Source: Heteronotia binoei (lineage: Eukaryota). Taken from it: a stretch of DNA of 64,000 bases. The notes below the pieces were generated by a model. The model was not told the DNA's origin, did not search any database, and was given only the letters and a program-made list of their open reading frames with translations. The translations under genes were made by a program, and so were the position numbers. The stretch's first letter is position 1, and every line of letters starts with the position of its first letter. The stretch is taken from assembly GCF_032191835.1 (NCBI RefSeq), contig NC_083224.1, positions 89,900,001 through 89,964,000 on the forward strand, in the 5' to 3' direction. Shown one piece after another: positions 21,690 to 42,805 of this stretch.

Positions 21690-22330
21690 AAAAGTAAGCC
21701 GGAACTTGCCTCCTGTCTTATCACTTGAGCAGTCTTTTTAAAAAAATCTCTCTGGTCTTTAGAAACACCACAGTCAGAATTATCTGTGTTCTGCTAGTGT
21801 TGTCTGAAACAATTGTACCGCTTCCCTATGAAACGAACTACCATAGAGAGTATCTGCATCGGAGCTCAATTGGCACTGTCTAGTGAATCCGGTGCCGCGC
21901 TGGCCGTTGGTTCAATCTAGGAGATGCGGTGAGGGGCCCTGGACTGTGCCTTGCGGGTTGCCGTCATGGCCAACGGTGAGCTGGGAATGGTTTGACTTGG
22001 CCTATTGGCTGGACCTTGGCGTTTGTAGTTACGGCGGCTCTGCGCTGATTCTCCGCAGGCCTATTTAAATGCCCCTCCCTTTTGCCCTGCGATGGACTGG
22101 CTCACCTGGCGGGCCTGCTCAGACGGTCAGGCCCCCTTCAGTCCCCCGGGCGAGTGGCAAAGCCGGTAGTGGCCCTGCCACCTCGTTGACTCTCTTTCTT
22201 CGCCTTCCCTGCAGTGTATTCTCTGGACGGGTTATTGGTGTTCGGCCTGCTGTTCGTGTGTACCTGCGCCTACTTCCGGAAGGTCCCTCGGCTGAAAGCC
22301 TGGCTGCTGTCGGAGAAGAGGGGGGTCTGG
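21690..22330 (+). promoter_or_regulatory. TMEM167B: TMEM167B CpG-rich promoter/5' region
   Basis: CpG enrichment around exons 1-2; ETS-type GCCGGAAC at ~21698. Confidence 0.65.
21966..21975 (+). CDS. TMEM167B: TMEM167B (protein kish-B) exon 1 (MAN+G)
   Basis: ATGGCCAACG|gtgag; human begins MTNV with the same split. Confidence 0.9.
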
Positions 22331-22346
22331 GGGGTATTTTACAAAG
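22215..22346 (+). CDS. TMEM167B: TMEM167B exon 2
   Basis: [V][43 protein letters not shown]; cag/gtac bounded, phase 1 to 1. Confidence 0.97.
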
Positions 22347-28866: not shown

Positions 28867-29147
28867 GAAGATGAAGAAGATATTGGATTTATATCCTGCC
28901 CTCTACTCGGAAGAGTCTCAAAGTGGCTCACAATCTCCTTTACCTTCCTCCCCCACAACAGACACCCTGTGAGGTGGGTGGGGCTGGAGAGGGCTCTCAC
29001 AGGAGCTGCCCTTTCAAGGACAACCTCTGCCAGAGCTATGGCGGACCCAAGGTCATGCTAGCAGGTGCAAGTGGAGGAGTGGGGAATCAAACGTGGTTCT
29101 CCCAGATAATAGTCTGCACACTTAACCACTACACCAGACTGGCACTC
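28867..29147 (-). mobile_element. tRNA-derived SINE with L2 tail (Squam3-like), full length
   Basis: Reverse complement of the 42522-42805 family with a (CTT)n tail. Confidence 0.85.
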
Positions 29148-29550
29148 CCCAGTGGTATGACCTCTTTCTTTTGAGCTTCCATCTATGCTCTGGCAAAAGG
29201 CATTGGGCAAGAGGAGTTGGACTCTGACTAGATATTTGAGCAGGTGAAGAAAATAAATTATTAACAAGAACAAGTTGATAGAATTTAAGAATCCAAGGAA
29301 AAGATCAGACTCACAGTAAACGCATTAGAGGTAGAAAAATCAGAATCAAGAAAACAATTTCCTTAAGAGGGACATATGTCTCAATTCACTGTCCATGGCA
29401 AAATAAGTGAAAACATATGAAAGACTTATTTGTACTATGCAGATCTGACATTACCACTTTATGGTATGGTGAAATAGTTCGAACCCAATTTTGGTTTTTT
29501 AGGTTAAGTTGCAGTCGTTGAGCTAATTAATCTGCAGAGTCATAGTAGAG

Positions 29551-30476: not shown

Positions 30477-30855
30477 GCTTTTAGCTCAGCGTTTAGCAGC
30501 CGGGGAGAGAGAATGGAGGTGGTTTGCATGGCGCGGGGTGTGAGTTTCGTGCGTTGTCTGCGTGTTTGGGGAGCTTCATGAAGTGTGCACGGGTGAGTGA
30601 GAGCGTGGCGTGAATGTCCTTGAGCTTGCGACGCTTTTTCTTACACATTGATCTTATTTGATCGGGCCGGGAGGTTGCCGTCTCCTCTGGTCTGAAATGA
30701 GAAGACGCCTTTCCTGTGAAGCCTTCGGGCGCTGTACAGCGAAACGGGTTGCAGGCGGCGCTTAGCCGGAGATGATGAATTGATCAGATAGATGAGGCCG
30801 AATGGAGGGGATACTCTCCTTACTGGCCAGTGTGTACTGAGGCGATTCTGATCCG
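30477..30855 (+). ncRNA. SCARNA2: scaRNA2 (mgU2-25/61) C/D-box small Cajal body RNA; 5' end approximate
   Basis: GU-rich 5' domain; TTGATCTTA guide + D' TTGA (30658) targets U2 G25; C box ATGATGA (30772-30778); ATCAGATA guide + ATGA (30792) targets U2 C61; terminal CTGA (30848-30851); same position as human, between TMEM167B and CFAP276. Confidence 0.95.
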
Positions 30856-31290
30856 GTTTTAGCGCTGCCGTTCCCGTTCTCCTGATACCTGCTGCGTACG
30901 ATTTGTTAGAAATGGTAGTTCCTTCCTCCCCACACGGCTCCAGTGTCTTTCTGCTGGTGAGCAGATTTACTTTTTTACTGGAAGAAAGTCTGGTTTGCTG
31001 CCACTGCAGCAAGGACGTTGAAAAAAAGCCTGGGGCTTCCAGGCCCTTTTGGCCTGGGCGTGACATAGCTGGCAAGGAGCAGGACAACTCATCGCTTCGT
31101 TCTGCCGGCCACTGCACGGTAGGGACCAGCAGGGAACATTAGAAGGAGTATGATGGCTGTTTCTGGGGCTATTTTGGGCCACCCAGTCTAGCCTGTAGAA
31201 ATTGGCTTACTGGTGTACCGGCAGAGCTATAGTTCCATCTTATGAAAGCCTTCATAACATGCTAATGGGTCAGGGTAAAAGTAGGATTTA

Positions 31291-33096
31291 CACAGATCTT
31301 CATGAATTCATATGATTTTTACATTGAAATGAAATCAAACCAGTATTCTGTAGATCCTGTCTTAGACTATAGGCAGGACTACAAAAATCATACCTCCATG
31401 AATTCATGGCGCCTCAGCAGTGCAAAAACAGGGTTCCAAAGCACGGATCCTAATGAATTCATATGATTTTTATGGTGAAATGAAATCAAACCAACATCAT
31501 GTTGTAGATCCTCTCTTAGACTATAGGCAGCACCAGAAAAATCATGCCTCCACGAATTTGTGGTGCCACAGCACTGAAAAAACATGTTTCCAAACCATGG
31601 ATCCTCATGATTTTTGCTTTGGGCCAACCCAAGATCACCAGCCAATGACATGTCCATGGGCAGATTTTGCACCACATAAATCATGGATCCACAGCTTTGT
31701 GGCAGCACCAGGGACCAAAAACTTGGTTTTGGACCACGGATCCTCATGGATCCACATATTTTTTGCTTTGGATCCCCCTAAGCCCTCCATCCAGTCACAT
31801 ATCATGTCCATGGGCTGAGTTTGCACCACAGAAATCATGGATCCACGGCTTCGTGGCAGCACCAGAAACCAAAAACTTGGTTTTGAACCACAGATCCTCA
31901 TGAATCCACGTGATTTCTGCTTCAGATCCCCCCAAGCCCTCCATCCAGTCACATATCTTGTCCATGGGCAGAGTTTGCACCCCACAAATCATGGATCCAT
32001 GGCTTTGTGGCAGCGCCAGAAACAAAAAACTTGGCTTTGGACCACGGATCCTCATGGATCCACATGATTTTTGCTTTGGATCCCCCCAAGCCCTCCATCC
32101 AGTCACATATCATGTCCATGGACAGAGTATGCACCCCACAAATCATGGATCCACGGCTTCATGGCAGTGCCAGGGACCAAAAACTTGGTTTTGGACCATG
32201 GATCCCCATGATTTCTGCTTCGGATCCCCCGAAGCTCATCATCCTGTCATATATCATGTCCATGGGCAGAGTTTGCACCTCAGAAATCGTGGATCCACAG
32301 GTTCGTGACAGCGCCAGGGACCAAAAACCTGGTTTTGAACCACGGATCCTCTTGGATCCACATGATTTCTGCTTTGGATTCCCCCAAGATCACCATCCGA
32401 TCACATATCATGTCCATGGACAGAGTTTGCACCACAGAAATCGTGGACCCACAGCTTTGTGGCAGCACCAGGGACCAAAAACCTGGTTTCAGACCACGTA
32501 TCCTCATGGATCCTCGTGATTTTTGCTTCGGATCCCTCGAAGCTCATCATCCAGTCACATATCATGTCCATGGACAGAGTTTGCACCCCAGAAATCATGG
32601 ATCCACGGCTTCGTGGCAGTGCCAGGGATCAAAAACCTGGTTTCAGACCATGGATCTTAATCGATCTTTCTGTTCTTGCTTCTCCCTCTGGAGTCATATA
32701 TTATGTCAATGGCCACAACTTAAATCCTAAAACCATGGATCCACAGTTTTTTGTGACACCTTGGAGCAAAAACTGGTCCCACACCATGGATCCTAACAGA
32801 TTTTTCTGTTCTTGTTTCATATCCCAAGCTCCCCCTCAAGTAATATGTCAGTGGCCACAACTTATATCCTATTGCCATGGATCCACAGTTTTGTGGTGAC
32901 ACCATGGAGATAAATATGGTCCTGCACCATGGAACCACATGGATCCCCATGGTTTTTGCTTGGGGTCACCCGAACATCAACATCAAACCACGTATCATGT
33001 CCATGGGTCTGCACCACAGAAGTTGTGGGTCCATGGTTTCGTGGGAACCCCATGGAGCAAGAACAGAGTTCCAGACCATCGATCCTCATGGATCCT
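31291..33096 (+). repeat. Left arm: ~12 tandem copies of a ~154-bp unit
   Basis: Anchor GGACCACGGATCC-like motif at 31731, 31885, 32039, 32193, 32337, 32491, 32645 (spacing 154, once 144); two variant outer units; decays inward. Confidence 0.95.
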
Positions 33097-33364
33097 CAGA
33101 ATGTCAAAGAATGAATTTTCGAAACTTTGTGTGTGAGCTCCACAAACTCAACATCTACTCGCTTATCACATCACTGGCCACTGTTTATGGCACGGAAATT
33201 TACTCAGTCATTTCCACACCACCATGTTACGAATTTGGATATCTAAAGTACAGATCTCTCATAGATTCATACTTATGATTGGACCCTCTGAAATGCAACA
33301 TCAAATCACATTTCACAGCAGGGTCCACAAACTATGGCACAAAAAACACCGTTTTGTGACACCC

Positions 33365-33638
33365 AACTTTATTGGACCCCCTAGTCTAATCCTTTTGAAA
33401 CTTGGTGGGTATTTTGGGGAGAGGCACTGGATGTCTCTACCCCAAAACACAGCCCCCGCAGAGCCCCAAACAGCCGTGGATGAATTTTCCATTTTACCCT
33501 ATGGGAATCGGTCTCCTTAGGGAATAATGGAGTGTCTAGCAGACACTACCCCCCCCCTGCTTTCTGATGACCCTGAAGTGGGGGAAGGACCTCCAAACAG
33601 GGGGATCCTCTGCCCCTACCTCAGGATTGGCTACCCTA
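33365..33638. mobile_element. End of a hAT (Blackjack-like) non-autonomous element
   Basis: Shares the module seen at ~1060 and ends TTGGCTACCCTA. Confidence 0.55.
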
Positions 33639-34346
33639 CTTTCCAGGTTAAAGGGTAGGCCAGCGTAGAATGGATTACAGTAATCTAGCCTGGAAGTGAC
33701 CACTGAATGGATTACCGTGGCTAGGTCTGAACGAGGCAGGAGGCGAACTAGTTGCCTGACTTGGCGTAGGTGGAAAAATGCAATTTTAGCAATATGTGTG
33801 ACCTGGGCCTCCACTGGAAGAGAGGCATCCAAGGTCACTCCCAAGCTCTTGACTGTTGGTGCCGGTGTTGAGGGTGCCCCATCAAGAGCAGGAAACCTAC
33901 ACTCCAGCTCCAACCCCGGTCCCCCCAGCCACAGAACCTCTATCTTTGAGTGGTTCAGTTTCAACCTACTCTGCTTCAGTGAGCCCACCATGGCCTCCAA
34001 ACCCACAGCCAAGGATGACAGGATTGAGGCCGATTGGTCACCGAAGAGCAAATACAGCTGAGTGTCATCTGCATAGTGATGACACCCTAGCCCAAAACTC
34101 CATACCAGCTGGGCAAGGGGAGAGGAGTGCCCCTTGAGGAACCCAACAAACCAGGGGGTGTAATGAGGACACATCCTCTCCTTGTGCCACCCTTTGTCCT
34201 CATGCGTGGAGAAAAGAGGAGAGCCACTGTAAGGCCAAGCCACATATTCCCATGTCATCAAGGCGGTGAGTCAACAGATCATAGTCGGCTGTATCAAACG
34301 CTGCTGTGAGATCCAATAATAACAGCAGTGCCAACCCGCCTTGATC

Positions 34347-35348
34347 CAGCTGCAAGCCATGGCTGACTGGCTCAGGCTGAGCGGGCTGAAGTTGAATCCA
34401 GCGAAGACTGAGGTCCTTTGCGTGGGCCGCGGCGGACTGGGAGGGGAGATTACGCTGCCGGCTTTTGACGGTGCGCCACTGATACCAGTGCGCAGAGTCA
34501 AGAGCCTGGGAGTGCTACTGGAATCCTCCTTGTCAATGGAAGCCCAGATAGCTGCCACTGCTAGATCCGCCTTCTTTCACCTCAAGAGGGCGAGGCAGTT
34601 GGCTCCCTTCTTGGAGCGCAGCGACCTAGCAACTGTGATCCACGCAACGGTCACCTCGAGACTAGACTACTGCAATGCCCTCTACATGGGGCTGCCCTTA
34701 TACCGAACGCGGAAACTTCAGGTAGTCCAGAACGCGGCGGCCAGGCTGCTATTGGGACTACCACGGTGGGAACATGTGCGGCCTGGGCTGCGGGATCTGC
34801 ATTGGCTGCCGGTTGTGTACCGTGTTCGCTATAAAGTGCTGGTCATTACCTTTAAAGCCCTATATGGCCGAGGACCCGCCTACCTAAGGGACCGCCTCTC
34901 CCCATATGTTCCCCAGAGAGCACTGAGATCTAGCTCGCAAAATCTCCTAATAATCCCTGGGCCAAGAGAGGCTCGATTGAAGGCAACCAGGGAGCAAGCC
35001 TTCTCCGCAATGGCCCCTCGATGGTGGAATCATCTACCAGAGATGGTGCGAGCCCTGCGGGACTTGAATCAATTCCGCAGGGCTTGTAAAACATTTCTTT
35101 TCCAGCTGGCTTTCGAAACAGAACCTGGCTAAACTGATGAGATTGATGTGTAGCCATCCAGCCATCTTGTGGATATTACGACCCATAGTAATGTAGCACC
35201 TTTTATCTATTTTAACTAATTTATTTACTATGTTATTGATTATTTAAAATTGTTGTTGTATTGTATTGTTTTATTGAACCATGGAATTCCATGCTTGTGA
35301 GCCGCCCTGAGCCCGCCTTTGGCGGGGGAGGGCGGGATATAAGAATAA

Positions 35349-35426
<78 letters not shown>
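34347..35426 (+). mobile_element. Young 5'-truncated L2 nested antisense in the older L2
   Basis: Open 263-aa RT C-terminal frame (34341-35132), 3' stem GCCGCCCTGAGCC...GGGCGG, long (ATT)n tail. Confidence 0.95.
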
Positions 35427-35427
<1 letters not shown>

Positions 35428-36044
35428 GCAACCAGAACCATCTCAGTCCTGTGACCAGGGCGGAAACCCAACTGGAATGGATGTAGCACCGATGTGCCCT
35501 GGAGCTGCTCAGCTACTGCTCTCTCAATTACCTTTCCCAGAAATGATAGATTTGATACTGAGCGGTAACTGGCCAGATCCACAGGATCTAACGATGGCTT
35601 CTTTAAGAGTGGCATAACCACTGCTTCCTTTAGGCCCTCTGGAAACATCCCAGTTTCTAGGGACAGGTTGATAATTTCCTTCATGGCCCTGGATCCTCAT
35701 ATCACCAGCACTAATCAGCCACAAGGGACATGGGTCTAGTAAGCAAGTGGTAGGTCTAACAGCTCCCAGGACCCTGTCAGTATCAGCAGAAGAGAGCAAG
35801 TTGAAAGAGTCACATACTGAATCCAAAGACGGCCAAGGGGCCTCCAGTTCATTCACTGTATCAAAATTGGCAGGTAGGTCATTGCGGAGCAACAAGACTT
35901 TATCCATGAAAAAGCTCATGAACGCCTCAGAACTAATAGCCAAATTATTTCCTCTGTTTGAGCCTCTAGTTGTGAGGGATCTTAGTGACCAAATTATTTT
36001 AAACATTTGAGCTTGGTGTGAGTAGGCCTGCCAAGCTCCCATGG

Positions 36045-36410
36045 AGAGCGGGAGATCCCCCAGCCTGGAAGGCCCAACTTGGCCACAGGAAGCAGGTTGC
36101 TGGAGGGATCCCTGCACCCAAAGAGTCCTGTCATCATGTGCTGTCCCTGGCATGATGACATCACTCAGAAGTTATGTCATCATGCCGGAGACATTGTGCT
36201 AGGGACGCTCTAGGAGTTGCAGCAAAAACTATAGTAGCATAGTGTTTTACTGCAAATTCTAGAGTGTTTCCAGTGTGACTCTTTCTGGTTTCTGGCTGTG
36301 ACTCTTTCAACTTGCTCTATGGTACCATAGAGTTTTACCACAACTCCTAGAGCGTCCCCAAAGTAATGCCCCCGGTGCAATTATGTCACTGCCAGCGGCG
36401 GAGTGGATGC
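36045..36410. mobile_element. MITE inserted in the older L2
   Basis: Non-L2 block with internal inverted GGGACGCTCTAGGAGTTG / CAACTCCTAGAGCGTCCC. Confidence 0.55.
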
Positions 36411-37269
36411 GATGGAGGCTGAATAGAACTCCCTCTTCACAGCCTTAACTGCCATCTAATAGGACCTCACCAACATCCTGAGTTGTTCAAGCCGTCTCGT
36501 CACAAGTACGCTGTCAAACTCGCTCTAGTCAGTTCTCCTGTTTCATCCCCTGGATTTCCTCTGTATACCAGGATGATGATTTTGCACAGGAGCACAGAGA
36601 ACATTGGGGTGCAATCTCTTTGATGGCTTCAGTGAGATGGGAATTCCAGTCCCCTACCAGTTCATTTAAGGAGGTGCAGGAGGGCTGTGGATCCTGCAGT
36701 GTTCTGGAACCCAATAGGGTCCATAAGTCTCCGCAGGCAAGCAAAAACCAGCTCGTCACCCAGACAGGGAAGAGCGGAAATGTCCAGCCAGGCCTTCAAA
36801 ACCAAATAGTCCGCCCATGGCACATCTTCCTTTGAGACTAGGTCCACATTCAACCCCATACTAAAGATCACATCCAATGTGTGGCATGCCTGATGTGTGT
36901 AACCCGAGATGATTTTTTTGAGTCCCAGTGCTGCCATGGAAGACATTAGTTCCATAGCCTGAACAGAAGTGGCAGGCTTGTCTGCATGGACATTGAAGTC
37001 TCCCAAGATCAATAGCCGTGGGAACTCCAAGGCCCACCCGGCCACCATCTCCAGCAGGCTCAGAAGGCCATCCGCTGGTGAGCTAGGCAATTGGTACACC
37101 ACACAGATGACCAGAATCACCTCTGACTTCCACACCAGACCAGCACATTCAATTCCAATGATTTTTGGGAAGGGGAGTGGTTGGAAGGAAAAAACCTCAT
37201 GGATGAGCAAAGCCACCTGCCCCCGTGTTCAAGACTGATGCAAGACCGAAAAACCTGGTGGGGCAAGCT

Positions 37270-37452
37270 CTTTCAGGGCGACTGTTCCCCCTTCCTGAAC
37301 CAAGCTGTGAGCTACTGGCATTAAAGTTGTGAGCTACTGCATAAATTAGTATGCTCAGGGGTCATTCTTCCTGAGCTAAGACAAAAATGTGTGAGCTGGA
37401 GGCTAAAAATCTGTGAGCTAGCTCAAACTAACTCAGCTTAAAGGGAACACTG
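37270..37452. mobile_element. MITE fragment
   Basis: Repeated TGTGAGCTA motifs; ends GGGAACACTG. Confidence 0.45.
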
Positions 37453-37730
37453 CTTGCCTGTGGTATTCTGGATTCATTTTGAGATGCTGATCATAACCTT
37501 TAAAGCCCTATATGGCCTGGGACCTATCTACCTTCAGGACCGCCTCTCCTCATATGTGCCCCAAAGAGCACAATGTTCAGGGTCCCAAAATCTTCTTCAG
37601 TTTCATGGACTGAAAGAAGTTCGATTTTCCATCACTAGAGCCAGAGCATTTTCAACAATAGGAATGCCCTTCCCAAAAACATCAGGGACCTCCGGGACCT
37701 GCCACAGTTCCGCCGGGCCTGTAAGACTGA
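37453..37730 (+). mobile_element. L2 3' fragment
   Basis: LIITFKALYGLGPIYLQDRLSSYVPQRA. Confidence 0.85.
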
Positions 37731-38117
37731 AGTATAGTGTCCAGATCACGTGATGTGATGGTATTGCTTTACTCTGCTCTGGTAAGACCTCACCTGGAGT
37801 ACTGTGTTCAGTTTTGGGCACCACATTTTAAGAAGGATATAGACAAGCTGGAACGGTTCCAGAAGAGGGCGATAAAGATGGTGAGGGATCTGGAGACCAA
37901 GTCCTATGAGGAAAGGTTGAAGGAGCTGGGGATGTTTAGCCTGGAGAGAAGGTGGCTGAGAGGTGATAGGATCACCAACTTCAAGTACTTGAAGGGCTGG
38001 AAGGTAGGACCAGAACCAATGGGTTGAAATTAAATCAAAAGAGTTTCTGGCTCAACATTAGGAAGAACTTCCTGACCATTAGAGCGATTCCTCAGTGGAA
38101 CAGGCTTTCTTGGGAGG
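37731..38117 (+). mobile_element. CR1 3' fragment; tail resumes at ~39097-39148
   Basis: [29 protein letters not shown]; GATTCTATGATTCTA tail at ~39135. Confidence 0.9.
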
Positions 38118-38149
38118 TAGGCTAGGGGAAGGCCTGGATATAAATTTGA

Positions 38150-39090
38150 TAAAATAAAGTTTTTCAAAGTTTGCCTTTCTGAAGTCTAATCTGTAAGTCT
38201 GACTACGTATAGCTTTCCCCTTCCCTAAGACTGTAAATTCTAAAATCACATGGTCACTACTGCCAGGGTGTCCACTATTTCCACTTCTTCAATCCATTCT
38301 TCCTTGTTGGTGAGAATCAGGTCCAAGATAGCAGATCCCCTTGTTTCTTTCTTCACTTTCTGGAAAAGGAAGTTGTCAGCAAGACAAGTCAGGAATCTAT
38401 TTGACTTTTCATTTTTAGCAGAGTTGGACTTCCAACAGATGTCTGAGTAATTGAAATCTCCCATGATCACTATGACCCTTCTCTTGGAGAACTTTGCAAT
38501 CTGTTGTAGGAGTATCTCATCCAAGTCCTCTGCCTGGCTTGGTGGTCTATACCATAATATCACTGTTTTTTTCTTACTTTTATTTTTACCCAGACTCTCA
38601 GCTGAGCTGCCATGTTCAGATTCACGTATTTCCTCACATGTATATACCTCCGTCACATATAACGCTATGCCTCTGCCCTTTCTCATTTGTCTGTCCCTTT
38701 TAAATAAGTTGTACCCCTGAATCCTAAATTCCAGTTGTGTCATCCCACCAAGTTTCAGTAAGGCCTATTATGTCAAAGTCTCCTTCCTGTATTAGGTCTT
38801 CCAGTTCATCCTGTTTGTTTCCCATACTCTGTGCATTAGTGTAGAGACATCGGAATCCACGTTTTATACATCCCGAGGGTTTATTTTCCATACAAACCTG
38901 CAAGTTCACATCATCTAGCGTATGTGCCATTCTCTGCAGATCTTTAATGTTCTTATCCCCAGTTTCTGGTATTATATGAGGCTTTGAATTATTGTCTTGC
39001 TCCCCCATACAATTTAGTTTAAAGCCCTCCTTATTAGGTTAGCAAGGCTGTTACAAAACACCCTTTTCCCTACTGTCGTAACGTGCAAAC
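38150..39090 (-). mobile_element. CR1 ORF1-end/ORF2 endonuclease fragment
   Basis: CLYTNAQSMGNKQDELE...[33 protein letters not shown]. Confidence 0.92.
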
Positions 39091-39289
39091 CATCTCCCAA
39101 TAGATGACCCTGGAGATCCCTTTCAACTCTTACGATTCTATGATTCTAATAGCCCAATATGATTAATAAAAGAATAATATAAAGATAATCCAGTCAATCA
39201 ATCCAAATCCATAATGTAATCAAGAGGTATTTAATTAATTAATTCACTATCTCCTATACAGAATTAAAATACAATTTTGGGGGGGGCAC

Positions 39290-41100
39290 TATGTGATTTA
39301 ATGGTGTATTTCTTCTGAACCAGTGCAAACATCATAAGGATCCATGAGGATTCATAGTCTGGAACCATGCATGTGTTCCATGGTGTTGTCGCTAAGCCGT
39401 AGAGCAAGCTATGCCCATGGACATATCTTATGGTGTGTTTTATGGTATGTTTGGGTGACTGAATGCAAAGACTTTGAGGACCCAAGAGGATCTGTGCTTC
39501 AGTACGATCTTTTGGCAGAATGGTGTAATCATGAACTCATGGATCCAAGACATTTCTGATGTAAACCATTATCATCATATGTGATATGATGGGAGTATTG
39601 GGGTCATCCAACGCAAAAACTCCAAAGATCAACGAGAATCCATGGTAAAACATGTTTTTACAGCATGGCTTCTCAAAGAAAGTGTGGATGTATAATTTCT
39701 GTGGCGCAAGTTGTGCCATGGATATGATACTATATTTGATGGTGATGTTGTGGTGACTCCAAGTAAAACCCCAGAGGATGCATGGGGATCCATGTTTCAA
39801 AACCATATTTTGGCTCCATGATAGTGACAAGAAGCTGTGGATCCATGAATTCTATGGTGCAAACCCTGCCCATGGACATCATATGTGACTGGATGGTGAG
39901 CTTGGGATGATGCAAAGCAAAAATCATGAGGATCCGTGAGAAAACATGCTTCAAAACCATGGTTTGGCTCACTGGTGTTGCCACAAAGCCATCCATCAGT
40001 GATTTCTGTGGTGCAAGCTGTGTGGCGGCCCAAAGCAAAAATCATTAGGATACATGGTCTGGAACCATTTTTTTGGGCCAAGGTGCTACCATGAAGTCGT
40101 GGATCCATGATCTCTGTGGTGCAAACTCTGCCCATAAACAGGATCTGTGATTTGATGGTGATGCTAGGATGTCCCAAAGCAAATATCATGAGGATCCATG
40201 GTTCAGAACCTTGTTTTTGCTCTGTGGTTTTGCCACATGGATCCATGATTTCTGTTGTGTGAGCTCTGCCCAAGGACATTATATCTGATTTGATTGTGAA
40301 TTTGGCTGGACCCAAAGCAGAAATCATGAGGAACCAGCAGGATCTGTGGTCCAAAAACAAATTCTTGGTCCTTGGTACTTCCACCAAGTCGTGGATCCAC
40401 GATTTCTGTGGTGCAAACTCTGCCCATGGACATATCTGACTGGATGGTGATCTTGGGGGAATCCAAGGCAAAAATCATGTGCATCCAAGAGGATCCATGG
40501 TCCAAAACCAAGCTTTGGTCCCTGGCGCTGCCACGAAGCCATGGATCCACGATTTCTGTAGTGCAAATTCTGCCCATGGACATGATATGTGATTGGATGG
40601 TGAGCTTGGGGGCATTCAAAGCAAAAATCATGGGAACCATGAGGAGCCGTGGTCCAAAACCAAGTTTTTGGTCCCTGGCGCTGCCACGAAACCGTGGATG
40701 CACGTTTTCCGTGATGCAAACTCTGCCCATGGACATGATATGTGACTGGATGCTGATCTTGGGGTAATCCAAGGCAAAAATCATGTGCATCCAAGAGGAT
40801 CCGTGGTTTGGAAACATGATTTTCCACTGCTGTGGTGCCACAGATTCGCGGAGGCATTTTTCTGGTGCTGCGTATAGTCTAATACAGGATCTATAGCGTG
40901 ATGGTGGTTTGATTTCATTTCACCGTAAAAATCATATGAATTCATGAGGATCCGTGCTTTGGAACCCTTTTTGCACTGGTGAAGCGCCACGAATCTGTGG
41001 AAGCATGATTTTTGTGGTCCTGCCTATAGTCTAAGACAGGATCTATAGAATTACAGTGGTTTGATTTCATTTCAATGTAAAAATCATATGAATTCATGAA
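39290..41100 (-). repeat. Right arm: ~12 copies of the same ~154-bp unit, inverted
   Basis: 41057-41100 is the exact reverse complement of 31299-31342; the two variant outer units correspond arm to arm; decays inward. Confidence 0.95.
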
Positions 41101-42235
41101 TTCTCTCCCCGATGTTATTTAACATCTATATGCGACCTCTTGCCCAGATTGCCCGAAGGTATGGGCTGGGGTGTCACCAGTATGCTGATGACACCCAGCT
41201 CTATCTACTTATGGACGACCGACCTGTCTCCGCCCCAGAAAATCTAGATCGGGCATTGCAGGCCGTGGCTGAGTGGCTCAGACTGAGTGGACTGAGACTG
41301 AATCCTGCGAAGACAGAGGTCCTTTGTTTGGGCCGTCGTGGACCGGAGGGGGAAATCCCCCTGCCGACTTTTGACGGTGCGCCGCTGACGGCGGCGGACA
41401 GGGTCAAGAGCCTGGGGGTGCTGTTGGAGCCGTCCCTAAAGATGGAGGCTCAGATAGCAACCACTGCCAAGTCCGCGTTCTTTCATCTTAGACGGGCAAG
41501 GCAATTGGCCCCCTTCCTGGACCGCGACGACCTAGCAACAGTGATCCATGCTACGGTCACCTCGAGATTGGATTACTGCAATGCCCTCTACATGGGGCTG
41601 CCCCTGTGCCGGACCCGGAAATTGCAGCTGGTGCAGAATGCCGCGGCCCGGCTGTTATTGGGCCTCCCAAGGTGGGGGCACATCCGGCCGGGCCTTCGGG
41701 CTCTGCACTGGCTTCCAATAACATACCGAGTCTGGTACAAGGTGCTGGTCATTACCTTTAAAGCCCTATATGGCCTGGGACCTGCCTACCTGAAGGACCG
41801 TCTCTCCCCACACGTTCCCCAGAGAGTACTGAGGTCTGGGACTCAAAACCTTCTCACCATCCCCGGGCCCAAGGAAGTCCGTCTCAAGACAACCAGAGAC
41901 AGGGCCTTTTCTACAATGGCCCCCACATGGTGGAACCAGCTGTCGGAAGAGGTGAGGGCCCTGCGGGATCTTACTCAGTTCCGCAGGGCCTGTAAGACAA
42001 CCCTCTTCCCGTTAGCTTATGCCGACTAGATAAATGTAGCTTATCAGATTTTAGTGAAATATACTGGATAGTTTTAATGTTAAGATTTTAAGGTTTTTAG
42101 GTTTTTTAAATGTTTTGACTTTTAAATGTATTAACTTTGTACCTTGTTTATTGTTTTGTCGTTGTTGTGAGCCGCCCTGAGCCACTTTGTGGGAAGGGCG
42201 GGATATAAATTATAGAATAAATAAATAAATAGAAT
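41101..42235 (+). mobile_element. Young 5'-truncated L2 LINE
   Basis: Open 305-aa frame 41112-42029 with HQYADDTQLY; L2 3' stem and (AATA)n tail. Confidence 0.95.
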
Positions 42236-42521
42236 AAATTGCAGTTTTGTGTTTATTTTTCTATGCAACTGATTATAAGGTGAGGGGGTTGGTTGCTCCT
42301 GAGGTTACAGAACCCTGTGAATGGAATTACCCAATAGATTATCTCAATCCTCCAGGATCCCTCCCCAAAAAATGTGAATTTATTTCAATGTCATATTAAT
42401 GTCAGCTGATATTGACTAGTGTCAGCTATCTCAGTTCCATGATTACTTTTTAGGATATTACTGCCAGGCAGAGACTCTTGGTGACAATTTAAAATTTATT
42501 TCTGTGGATTTATAGTCTCTT

Positions 42522-42805
42522 GGAGAGCCAGTTTGGTGTAGTGGTTAAGTGTGCGGACTCTTATCTGGGAGAACCGGGTTTGATTCCCCACTCCTCCACT
42601 TGCACCTGCTAGCATGGCCTTGGGTCAGCCATAGCCCTGGCAGAGGTTGTCCTTGAAAGGGCAGCTGCTGTGAGAGCCCTCTCCAGCCCCACCCACCTCA
42701 CAGGGTGTCTGTTGTGGGGGAGGAAGGTAAAGGAGATTGTGAGCCGCTCTGAGACTCTTCGGAGTGGAGGGTGGGATATAAATCCAATATCTTCTTCATC
42801 TTTTT
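42522..42805 (+). mobile_element. tRNA-derived SINE with L2 tail (Squam3-like), full length
   Basis: GGTGTAGTGGTTAAG A box, GGGTTTGATTCCCC B box, TGTGAGCCGCTCTGAG L2-type tail, (CTT)n end. Confidence 0.88.

Follow-up and report, generated by a model that had tools for sequence, protein, structure and literature searches.

Organization of the locus

We identified a pair of inverted tandem arrays within the window, which is the 64-kb stretch of Heteronotia binoei DNA analysed here. The arrays form an island of their own in gene-rich surroundings, with the small-RNA gene SCARNA2 on one side and ordinary intergenic sequence on the other; the island begins 435 bp downstream of SCARNA2, and the locus lies ~9 kb from a TMEM167B exon. 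The left arm (31291-~33315, + orientation, ~2.0 kb) and the right arm (39290-41100, - orientation, ~1.8 kb) occupy opposite strands, and each contains ~13 units of a ~154-bp repeat. Together with the LINE that abuts the right arm, the main features are:

31291..31594, + strand: left terminal domain, variant units L1 (31291-31440) and L2 (31441-31594); outer-unit HMM E 1.7e-48 and 1.2e-50
31595..32647, + strand: left core block, seven homogeneous ~154-bp units L3-L9; core HMM E 3e-43 to 2e-51
32648..33315, + strand: left inner domain, decayed units L10-L13 and traces; core HMM E 4e-11 to 0.12
33316..39289, no strand assigned: spacer between the arms; ORFs, Pfam RVT_1, Exo_endo_phos_2 and Exo_endo_phos
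39290..39795, - strand: right inner domain, decayed units R10-R13; core HMM E 9e-08 to 3e-17
39796..40806, - strand: right core block R3-R9; core HMM E 1e-49 to 2e-21
40807..41100, - strand: right terminal domain, units R2 (40807-40957) and R1 (40958-41100); outer-unit HMM E 1e-48 and 9e-46
41101..42240, + strand: 5'-truncated L2-like LINE replacing the right terminus; 305-aa ORF with RVT_1, E 4.5e-10

The initial annotation had described the locus as two inverted arms of 154-bp tandem repeats, and this description was borne out by each approach that we used. Tandem Repeats Finder (TRF) reported arrays of period 152-154 at 31291-32656 and 40236-41099, and a repeat search returned 51 inverted pairs linking the left and right blocks, the longest of 301 nt. 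A profile HMM was built from the array units and scanned across the window. It placed units on opposite strands with E values down to 1e-51, on the + strand at 31291-33199 (weakly to 33315) and on the - strand at 39290-41100, and found no further repeat unit anywhere else in the 64 kb. Once the LINE-derived spacer is set aside, the inverted arms make up nearly the whole structure.

Each arm consists of three parts: two diverged 154-bp units, a homogeneous block of the UhenSat05-153 satellite family and a decayed inner domain. The two arms had been thought to share the same polarity from the outside in, and the HMM and the tree of units agree on this order of variant units, homogeneous block and decayed units. 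In the left arm the boundary is sharp, with the array beginning at unit position 1-2, and the core units L3-L9 show pairwise identities of 82-91%. Its inner domain includes a 142-bp variant pair, L10/L11 (TRF period 142 at 32622-32933), and one exception to the general decay, L12 (core HMM E 1e-30). The homogeneous part of the right core is limited to R3-R5 and fades through R9, as units R6-R9 diverge step by step, and R10-R13 sit on terminal branches of 0.30-0.33 in the tree. R1 is present without its last 9 bp, the match to the outer-unit HMM beginning at profile position 10.

Relationship between the two arms

The outermost units of the two arms pair in register. L1 and R1 are 93% identical and L2 and R2 89%, compared with 81-84% for other pairs; the estimate of ~85-90% that had been made by eye for the outer units was thus right in ranking them above their neighbours (84%) and slightly low. 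In the tree, the variant outer units group in a clade apart from the rest (support 100/100), and the in-register pairs (L1,R1) and (L2,R2) are recovered with support of 99/91 and 98/88, respectively. Core units of both arms interleave rather than grouping by arm, with R3-R5 falling among the left-arm core units. The terminal 44 bp, which the initial annotation had singled out as identical in inverted orientation, are indeed so (31300-31343 versus 41100-41057). The probability that all 13 differences would miss the first 44 columns is P = 0.007, whereas a 44-bp identical run placed anywhere in the unit would be unremarkable (P = 0.10). The inner units are out of register between the arms, at 65-80% identity, and the arms were therefore never simple full-length duplicates.

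This pattern bears on two alternative explanations. Long-read assembly is known to fail at long inverted repeats, and the structure could in principle be a false inverted duplication created from chimeric fold-back reads. Such an artefact should have near-identical arms, whereas these differ by 7-35% unit by unit and also in their unit counts and indels. Moreover, 6 kb of unique LINE mosaic separates the arms, and only one of them is cut by a LINE. The divergence of the arms effectively refutes an assembly error, to which we assign a negligible probability.

A second alternative, and the strongest competitor of the foldback reading, is that the locus is a small, immobile euchromatic island of UhenSat05-153-type repeats that underwent a local inverted duplication or switch of polarity, with LINEs later filling its unstable centre. 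Fold-back repair of a break would produce such an inverted duplication, and degenerate edges around a homogeneous centre, as seen in both arms, are typical of satellite arrays. However, after a one-step inverted duplication the in-register identity should be uniform; here, in-register pairing is limited to the two outermost units, and the inner units fall to 65-80%. It also leaves unexplained how the island arrived at a gene-rich site.

Spacer, termini and flanks

We found that the spacer is mostly LINE-derived, as indicated by its Pfam domains and by blocks of L2-like sequence. Within it are:

~33371-33650: short interspersed repeat
33536-37228, - strand: L2-like LINE
34341-~35426, + strand: nested L2-like 3' half ending in (TTA)25
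37454-37753, + strand: L2-like fragment
37737-~38200, + strand: CR1-like 3' piece
38246-39008, - strand: CR1-like endonuclease piece

In addition, 34351-35112 matches the L2-like element beyond the right arm at 41257-42018, with 77% identity. The initial annotation held that the ~6-kb spacer is nearly all later insertions; its LINE origin is confirmed in the main, while we infer the timing implied by "later". A patchwork of truncated LINEs also resembles ordinary intergenic DNA, and no homology links the inner ends of the two arms. Both observations would fit a chance arrangement in which a one-armed, array-bearing element inserted twice, independently, ~6 kb apart and in opposite orientation, with LINE-rich host DNA between the two insertions. 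Against this, the terminal domains both face outward and the numbers of units are about equal. Since the 64 kb contain no other unit, two chance insertions within 6 kb of each other and in mirror arrangement are improbable, and we give this explanation little credence.

As had been anticipated, no transposase and no target-site duplication (TSD) could be seen. Searches of the ORFs and of Pfam identified no transposase in the element, and Pfam identified no MULE or other DNA transposase in the 43 other ORFs of the window. The lack of a MULE DDE transposase in the element or the window means that the copy is non-autonomous at best. A 170-aa ORF from the array had no relatives in a protein search, and a 39-nt terminal motif gave 0 matches in a metagenome scan.

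Only one terminus of the two, the left, survives. A 5'-truncated L2-like LINE begins exactly at 41101, where the earlier reading had an L2 cutting the right end, and has taken the last 9 bp of the right terminal unit. Neither these 9 bp nor any repeat of the left flank was found beyond the 3' tail of the LINE, and the terminal 12-mer was seen only at 31290-31301. Because the LINE removed the right terminus, the TSD is unreadable.

Matches between the two flanks are confined to a pair of SINEs and one other interspersed repeat, which do not lie in mirrored order, so that homology between the arms ends at the edge of the arrays. A larger palindrome taking in the flanks was considered and rejected for the same reason. 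A local duplication would require its outer end to have met the array edge by chance, and flank homology is not seen.

Origin of the repeat unit

The ~154-bp arm unit is homologous to UhenSat05-153, a link made here from sequence comparison. This satellite of the gecko Uroplatus henkeli forms long tandem arrays at centromeres and on the W chromosome, and its description mentions neither inverted pairs nor transposons (PMC11049218, Table S2). By hand alignment, the unit and the monomer appear colinear over their whole length, with agreement at 118/154 columns (~77%). Similarity between the two rises to 87-90% in a GGATCC-N4-GGATCC block and in a block of 38 nt. In addition, a 34-nt block of UhenSat05-153 matches 31824-31857 and 32584-32617 with 2-3 mismatches, giving 2 matches against 0 expected. 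The periods are also close (153 and 154 bp), and both repeats are arranged as head-to-tail monomers. The two differ in setting, since the present locus is a mirrored island of 2 x 1.8 kb in gene-rich DNA and not a long centromeric or heterochromatic array. The terminal variant unit has no counterpart in the Uroplatus henkeli satellitome (PMC11049218). Squamate satellites derived from part of a Squam SINE have been described (PMC10702118). In a comparison with the SINE copies of the window (28868-29148 and 42522-42802), the unit HMM matched neither of them.

The satellite link changes the weight of the explanations. The initial annotation also named a satellite dispersed by a foldback element as an alternative, and this gains weight now that the unit is known to be a published gecko satellite. 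It likewise favours a local switch of polarity, as the unit is a tandem satellite with centromeric arrays in another gecko and a satellite needs no transposon to switch polarity; the missing transposase and the unreadable TSD point in the same direction. Taking into account the pattern of pairing between the arms, we regard a local origin as rather unlikely.

Comparison with foldback elements

We suggest that the locus is probably an old copy of a foldback-type DNA transposon, dead and non-autonomous, whose architecture most resembles that of Tetris of Drosophila. The foldback reading of the initial annotation is supported by the inverted arms of tandem units, the terminal domain that they share, the sharp left edge and the absence of flank homology; it is weakened by the missing transposase and the unreadable TSD. 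Features of the foldback class found here are long terminal inverted repeats and tandem sub-repeats with a distinct terminal domain.

Tetris, or TIR-220, is a non-coding foldback element of Drosophila virilis with kilobase-long inverted repeats, each arm consisting of an outer flanking domain, a block of ~220-bp tandem repeats and an inner domain, with a variable middle enclosed by the two arms; its repeat exists as satellite arrays too (PMC4079207). The present locus has the same three-domain arm and a non-coding middle, and the double role of the Tetris repeat as a satellite parallels the link between the arm unit and UhenSat05-153. In contrast, the host of Tetris is an insect, its repeat is 220 rather than 154 bp and the sequences are unrelated. 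The terminal domain here consists of two diverged copies of the repeat unit itself. Tetris also has documented TSDs of 8-10 bp and multiple copies, and the present copy shows neither.

Foldback elements have been recorded in insects, nematodes, sea urchins and plants. In Drosophila Foldback (FB), the sub-repeats are 10-31 bp in length. Both FB and Tm1 of Meloidogyne, members of the Mutator/Foldback group, are mostly non-coding and have composite inverted repeats of variable length made of tandem units, with 9-bp TSDs and a MULE/Phantom transposase in some copies (PMC3169594). Within a single Tm1 element the arms are on average 93% identical, with sub-repeats of 13-15 bp (PMC3169594). The gecko locus shares the inverted repeats of tandem units, and its outer units resemble Tm1 in their 93% identity. 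However, it shows none of the short sub-repeats, the 9-bp TSDs or the transposase copies of this group.

A more tentative proposal, which we consider possible but doubtful, is that the locus is a decayed copy of a vertebrate Mutator/Foldback family whose arm repeat is a gecko-wide centromeric satellite family, the transposon having seeded the satellite or been built from it, in the manner of Tetris in Drosophila. The very existence of Mutator-type elements in vertebrates has been questioned in a recent survey (PMC6446971). In the literature we came across no foldback element described from a reptile; the family had been called apparently undescribed, and this seems to hold for a reptile foldback element but not for the repeat unit, which had already been described as a satellite. 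If the family is real, it would connect a dispersed transposon with the centromeric satellite of another gecko, and it would provide a vertebrate case of transposon arms becoming satellite DNA as well as a source of long inverted repeats able to drive rearrangements. To these questions the degraded copy contributes its anatomy and the link to a satellite; it does not prove mobility.

If the locus is a foldback copy, a transposase supplied in trans may have recognised the terminal domain together with the repeated palindromic GGATCC-containing sites, and would have cut and pasted the whole hairpin-capable unit. The copy would have landed downstream of SCARNA2, at the distance seen today, and then decayed, so that units in register have come to differ by 8-11% between its arms. 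LINE fragments would have filled the middle of the element, and the 5'-truncated L2-like LINE would have taken its right tip. A possible model for the use of repeated sites is provided by Galileo, which has a THAP/P-type transposase and 7-bp TSDs. The long inverted repeats of this element of the P superfamily are internally repetitive and carry multiple sites for transposase binding (PMC3573991, PMC3688188), and GGATCC-type sites might work here in a similar manner. Unlike Galileo, nothing at this locus assigns a superfamily. The palindromic sites also account for a minor observation: a comparison of 30500-42500 with Rfam assigned the arms to no RNA family, ribozymes included, and its single sub-threshold match, a histone stem-loop look-alike, arises from the GGATCC-N4-GGATCC hairpin.

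Anatomy of the inverted arms

The locus is probably an old, dead, non-autonomous foldback-type element, whose two arms of tandem units of about 154 bp lie in opposite orientation on either side of a LINE-filled spacer. There are about 13 units per arm, numbered here L1-L13 on the left and R1-R13 on the right from the outside inward.

31291-32656: tandem array, period 152-154 (Tandem Repeats Finder)
40236-41099: tandem array, period 152-154 (Tandem Repeats Finder)
31291-33199, + strand: left-arm units, with traces to 33315 (profile HMM)
39290-41100, - strand: right-arm units (profile HMM)

A repeat search of the window joined the left and right blocks by 51 inverted pairs, and profile HMMs made from the units into which both blocks were cut gave unit matches on opposite strands with E-values down to 1e-51. 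The initial annotation had described an outside-in polarity common to both arms, from two variant units through a homogeneous block to decayed units, and this was borne out by unit comparison and by the HMMs. The homogeneous block comprises L3-L9 in the left arm and R3-R5 in the right arm, where it fades through R9. Two independent insertions are unlikely, and distinctly so, given that the tips of both arrays face outward and that the profile HMMs found no further unit outside the arms in the 64-kb window. An assembly artefact can be ruled out, since corresponding units diverge by 7-35% between the arms, the indels are not the same, and only one arm is cut by a LINE.

Relationship between the arms

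The outermost units pair in register, with identities of 93% for L1-R1 and 89% for L2-R2 against 81-84% for L1-L2, R1-R2 and the cross pairs. In a maximum-likelihood tree of the units, these same pairs were recovered with support of 99/91 (L1,R1) and 98/88 (L2,R2), and all four formed one clade (100/100) on a long branch. The first 44 shared bases of L1 and R1 are identical (31300-31343 and 41100-41057); were the 13 L1-R1 differences randomly placed, all would miss those first 44 columns with P = 0.007, while the value for a 44-bp identical run at any place in the unit is P = 0.10. Core units from both arms are interleaved in the tree, and their K2P distances are about alike between arms (0.19) and within arms (0.17). 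Inner units show no register between the arms, with identities of just 65-80%. Taken together, these patterns of sequence similarity indicate that both arms come from one array end with an already differentiated two-unit tip, and that neither was ever a plain copy of the other over its full length. The in-register K2P between arms is 0.084-0.115. On the assumption that the arms started out identical, a neutral rate of ~1e-9 per site per year, itself uncertain for geckos, would give the insertion an age of the order of tens of millions of years.

The unit as a satellite

Decayed CpGs occur in the core consensus, as do four GGATCC sites, of which the two at its start make up the motif GGATCC-N4-GGATCC. 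This motif opens every unit and corresponds to a stem of 6 bp closed by a 4-nt loop; it also gives rise to a sub-threshold Rfam match to the histone 3' stem-loop at 32339-32384 (19.9 bits, E 0.17). The terminal variant units carry GAATTC in place of the second GGATCC, two symmetric substitutions that leave the site palindromic.

The monomer of UhenSat05-153, a published satellite of the Madagascar leaf-tailed gecko Uroplatus henkeli (PMC11049218, Table S2), aligns colinearly with the 154-bp unit once the latter is reverse-complemented. By hand alignment, 118/154 columns match (about 77%), including 19/21 across the double GGATCC, the best-conserved part common to both, and 33/38 across GCCACGAAG.CGTGGATCC.TGATTT.TGTGGTG. 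Searching with a 34-nt block taken from this monomer gave two left-arm matches at 2-3 mismatches, against a chance expectation of zero. UhenSat05-153 is centromeric on all U. henkeli chromosomes and accumulated on the W chromosome, is scattered in U. guentheri, and resembles sequences in gecko genomes (PMC11049218). The paper makes no mention of inverted pairs or transposons for this satellite, and its Uroplatus satellitome holds nothing that corresponds to the terminal variant unit (PMC11049218).

Boundaries and flanking sequence

The left edge of the element is sharp, at unit position 1-2, with unique sequence further left.

22214-22345: TMEM167B (kish-B) exon
30512-30856, + strand: full-length SCARNA2 (Rfam RF01268, 107.6 bits with a gathering cutoff of 48, model positions 1-420)
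41101-~42240: 5'-truncated L2-like LINE with a 305-aa ORF (RVT_1, E 4.5e-10)

SCARNA2 lies 435 bp to the left of the element and, with the TMEM167B exon nearby, places it in gene-rich DNA. This looks like a conserved locus, because the two genes presumably adjoin each other in human as well. On the right, the L2-like LINE starting exactly at 41101 has replaced the last 9 bp of R1. The sequence beyond the LINE tail contained neither these 9 bp nor any repetition of left-flank sequence, so no target-site duplication can be read. A local polarity switch within a satellite island agrees with that absence and with the unit being a satellite, yet it leaves unexplained why register is not uniform, why the end of the copy coincides with the array edge, and how the sequence arrived at a SCARNA2-adjacent site; we regard it as a rather improbable alternative, albeit the strongest.

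Outside the arms, homology between the flanks comes down to a SINE pair (94%) and a single further interspersed repeat, in non-mirrored order, so that inverted homology is limited to the arrays. The tRNA-derived SINEs, which we read as Sauria-like, lie in opposite orientation at 28868-29148 (-) and 42522-42802 (+). They were rejected as part of the palindrome, being independent insertions at unequal distances around the region.

Comparison with known foldback elements

The foldback-type element favored here resembles Tetris of Drosophila virilis in its three-domain arm and non-coding middle; the 220-bp arm repeats of Tetris form satellite arrays too (PMC4079207). Tm1 and Drosophila FB offer additional models (PMC3169594), and Galileo provides one of transposase binding by repeated arm sites (PMC3573991, PMC3688188). 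Our literature search turned up no publication on foldback elements from geckos or any other reptile, and a survey of Mutator elements doubts their existence in vertebrates at all (PMC6446971). Foldback architecture is already known, as is the unit, as a published satellite. The main value of the locus therefore lies in the link between transposon and satellite, and in what a family rather than a worn copy may show.

Composition of the spacer

On the evidence of ORFs, Pfam domains and repeat matches, the spacer (33.4-39.3 kb) is almost entirely LINE-derived, and these LINEs probably came after the arms.

Spacer, - strand: L2-like element harbouring a nested L2-like 3' half on the + strand, ending in (TTA)25
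Spacer: further L2-like fragment
Spacer: CR1-like 3' piece
Spacer: CR1-like endonuclease piece

No DNA transposase was found in the spacer or among the 43 other ORFs of the window. Several of the LINE pieces have no 3' end, among them 33536-34261 (-) and 38246-39008 (-), and such loss is not a product of ordinary target-primed insertion. Speculatively, these pieces might have been shortened by deletion after insertion or, alternatively, captured at DNA breaks in the centre of an unstable palindrome. The (TTA)25 at the nested L2-like 3' end is a perfect microsatellite (35351-35426) and is read as poly-isoleucine in a - strand ORF. A short interspersed repeat (33371-33428), possibly the MITE of the initial annotation, borders the left arm on its inner side and has a second copy close to the beginning of the window at 1037-1094 (81% over 58 bp).
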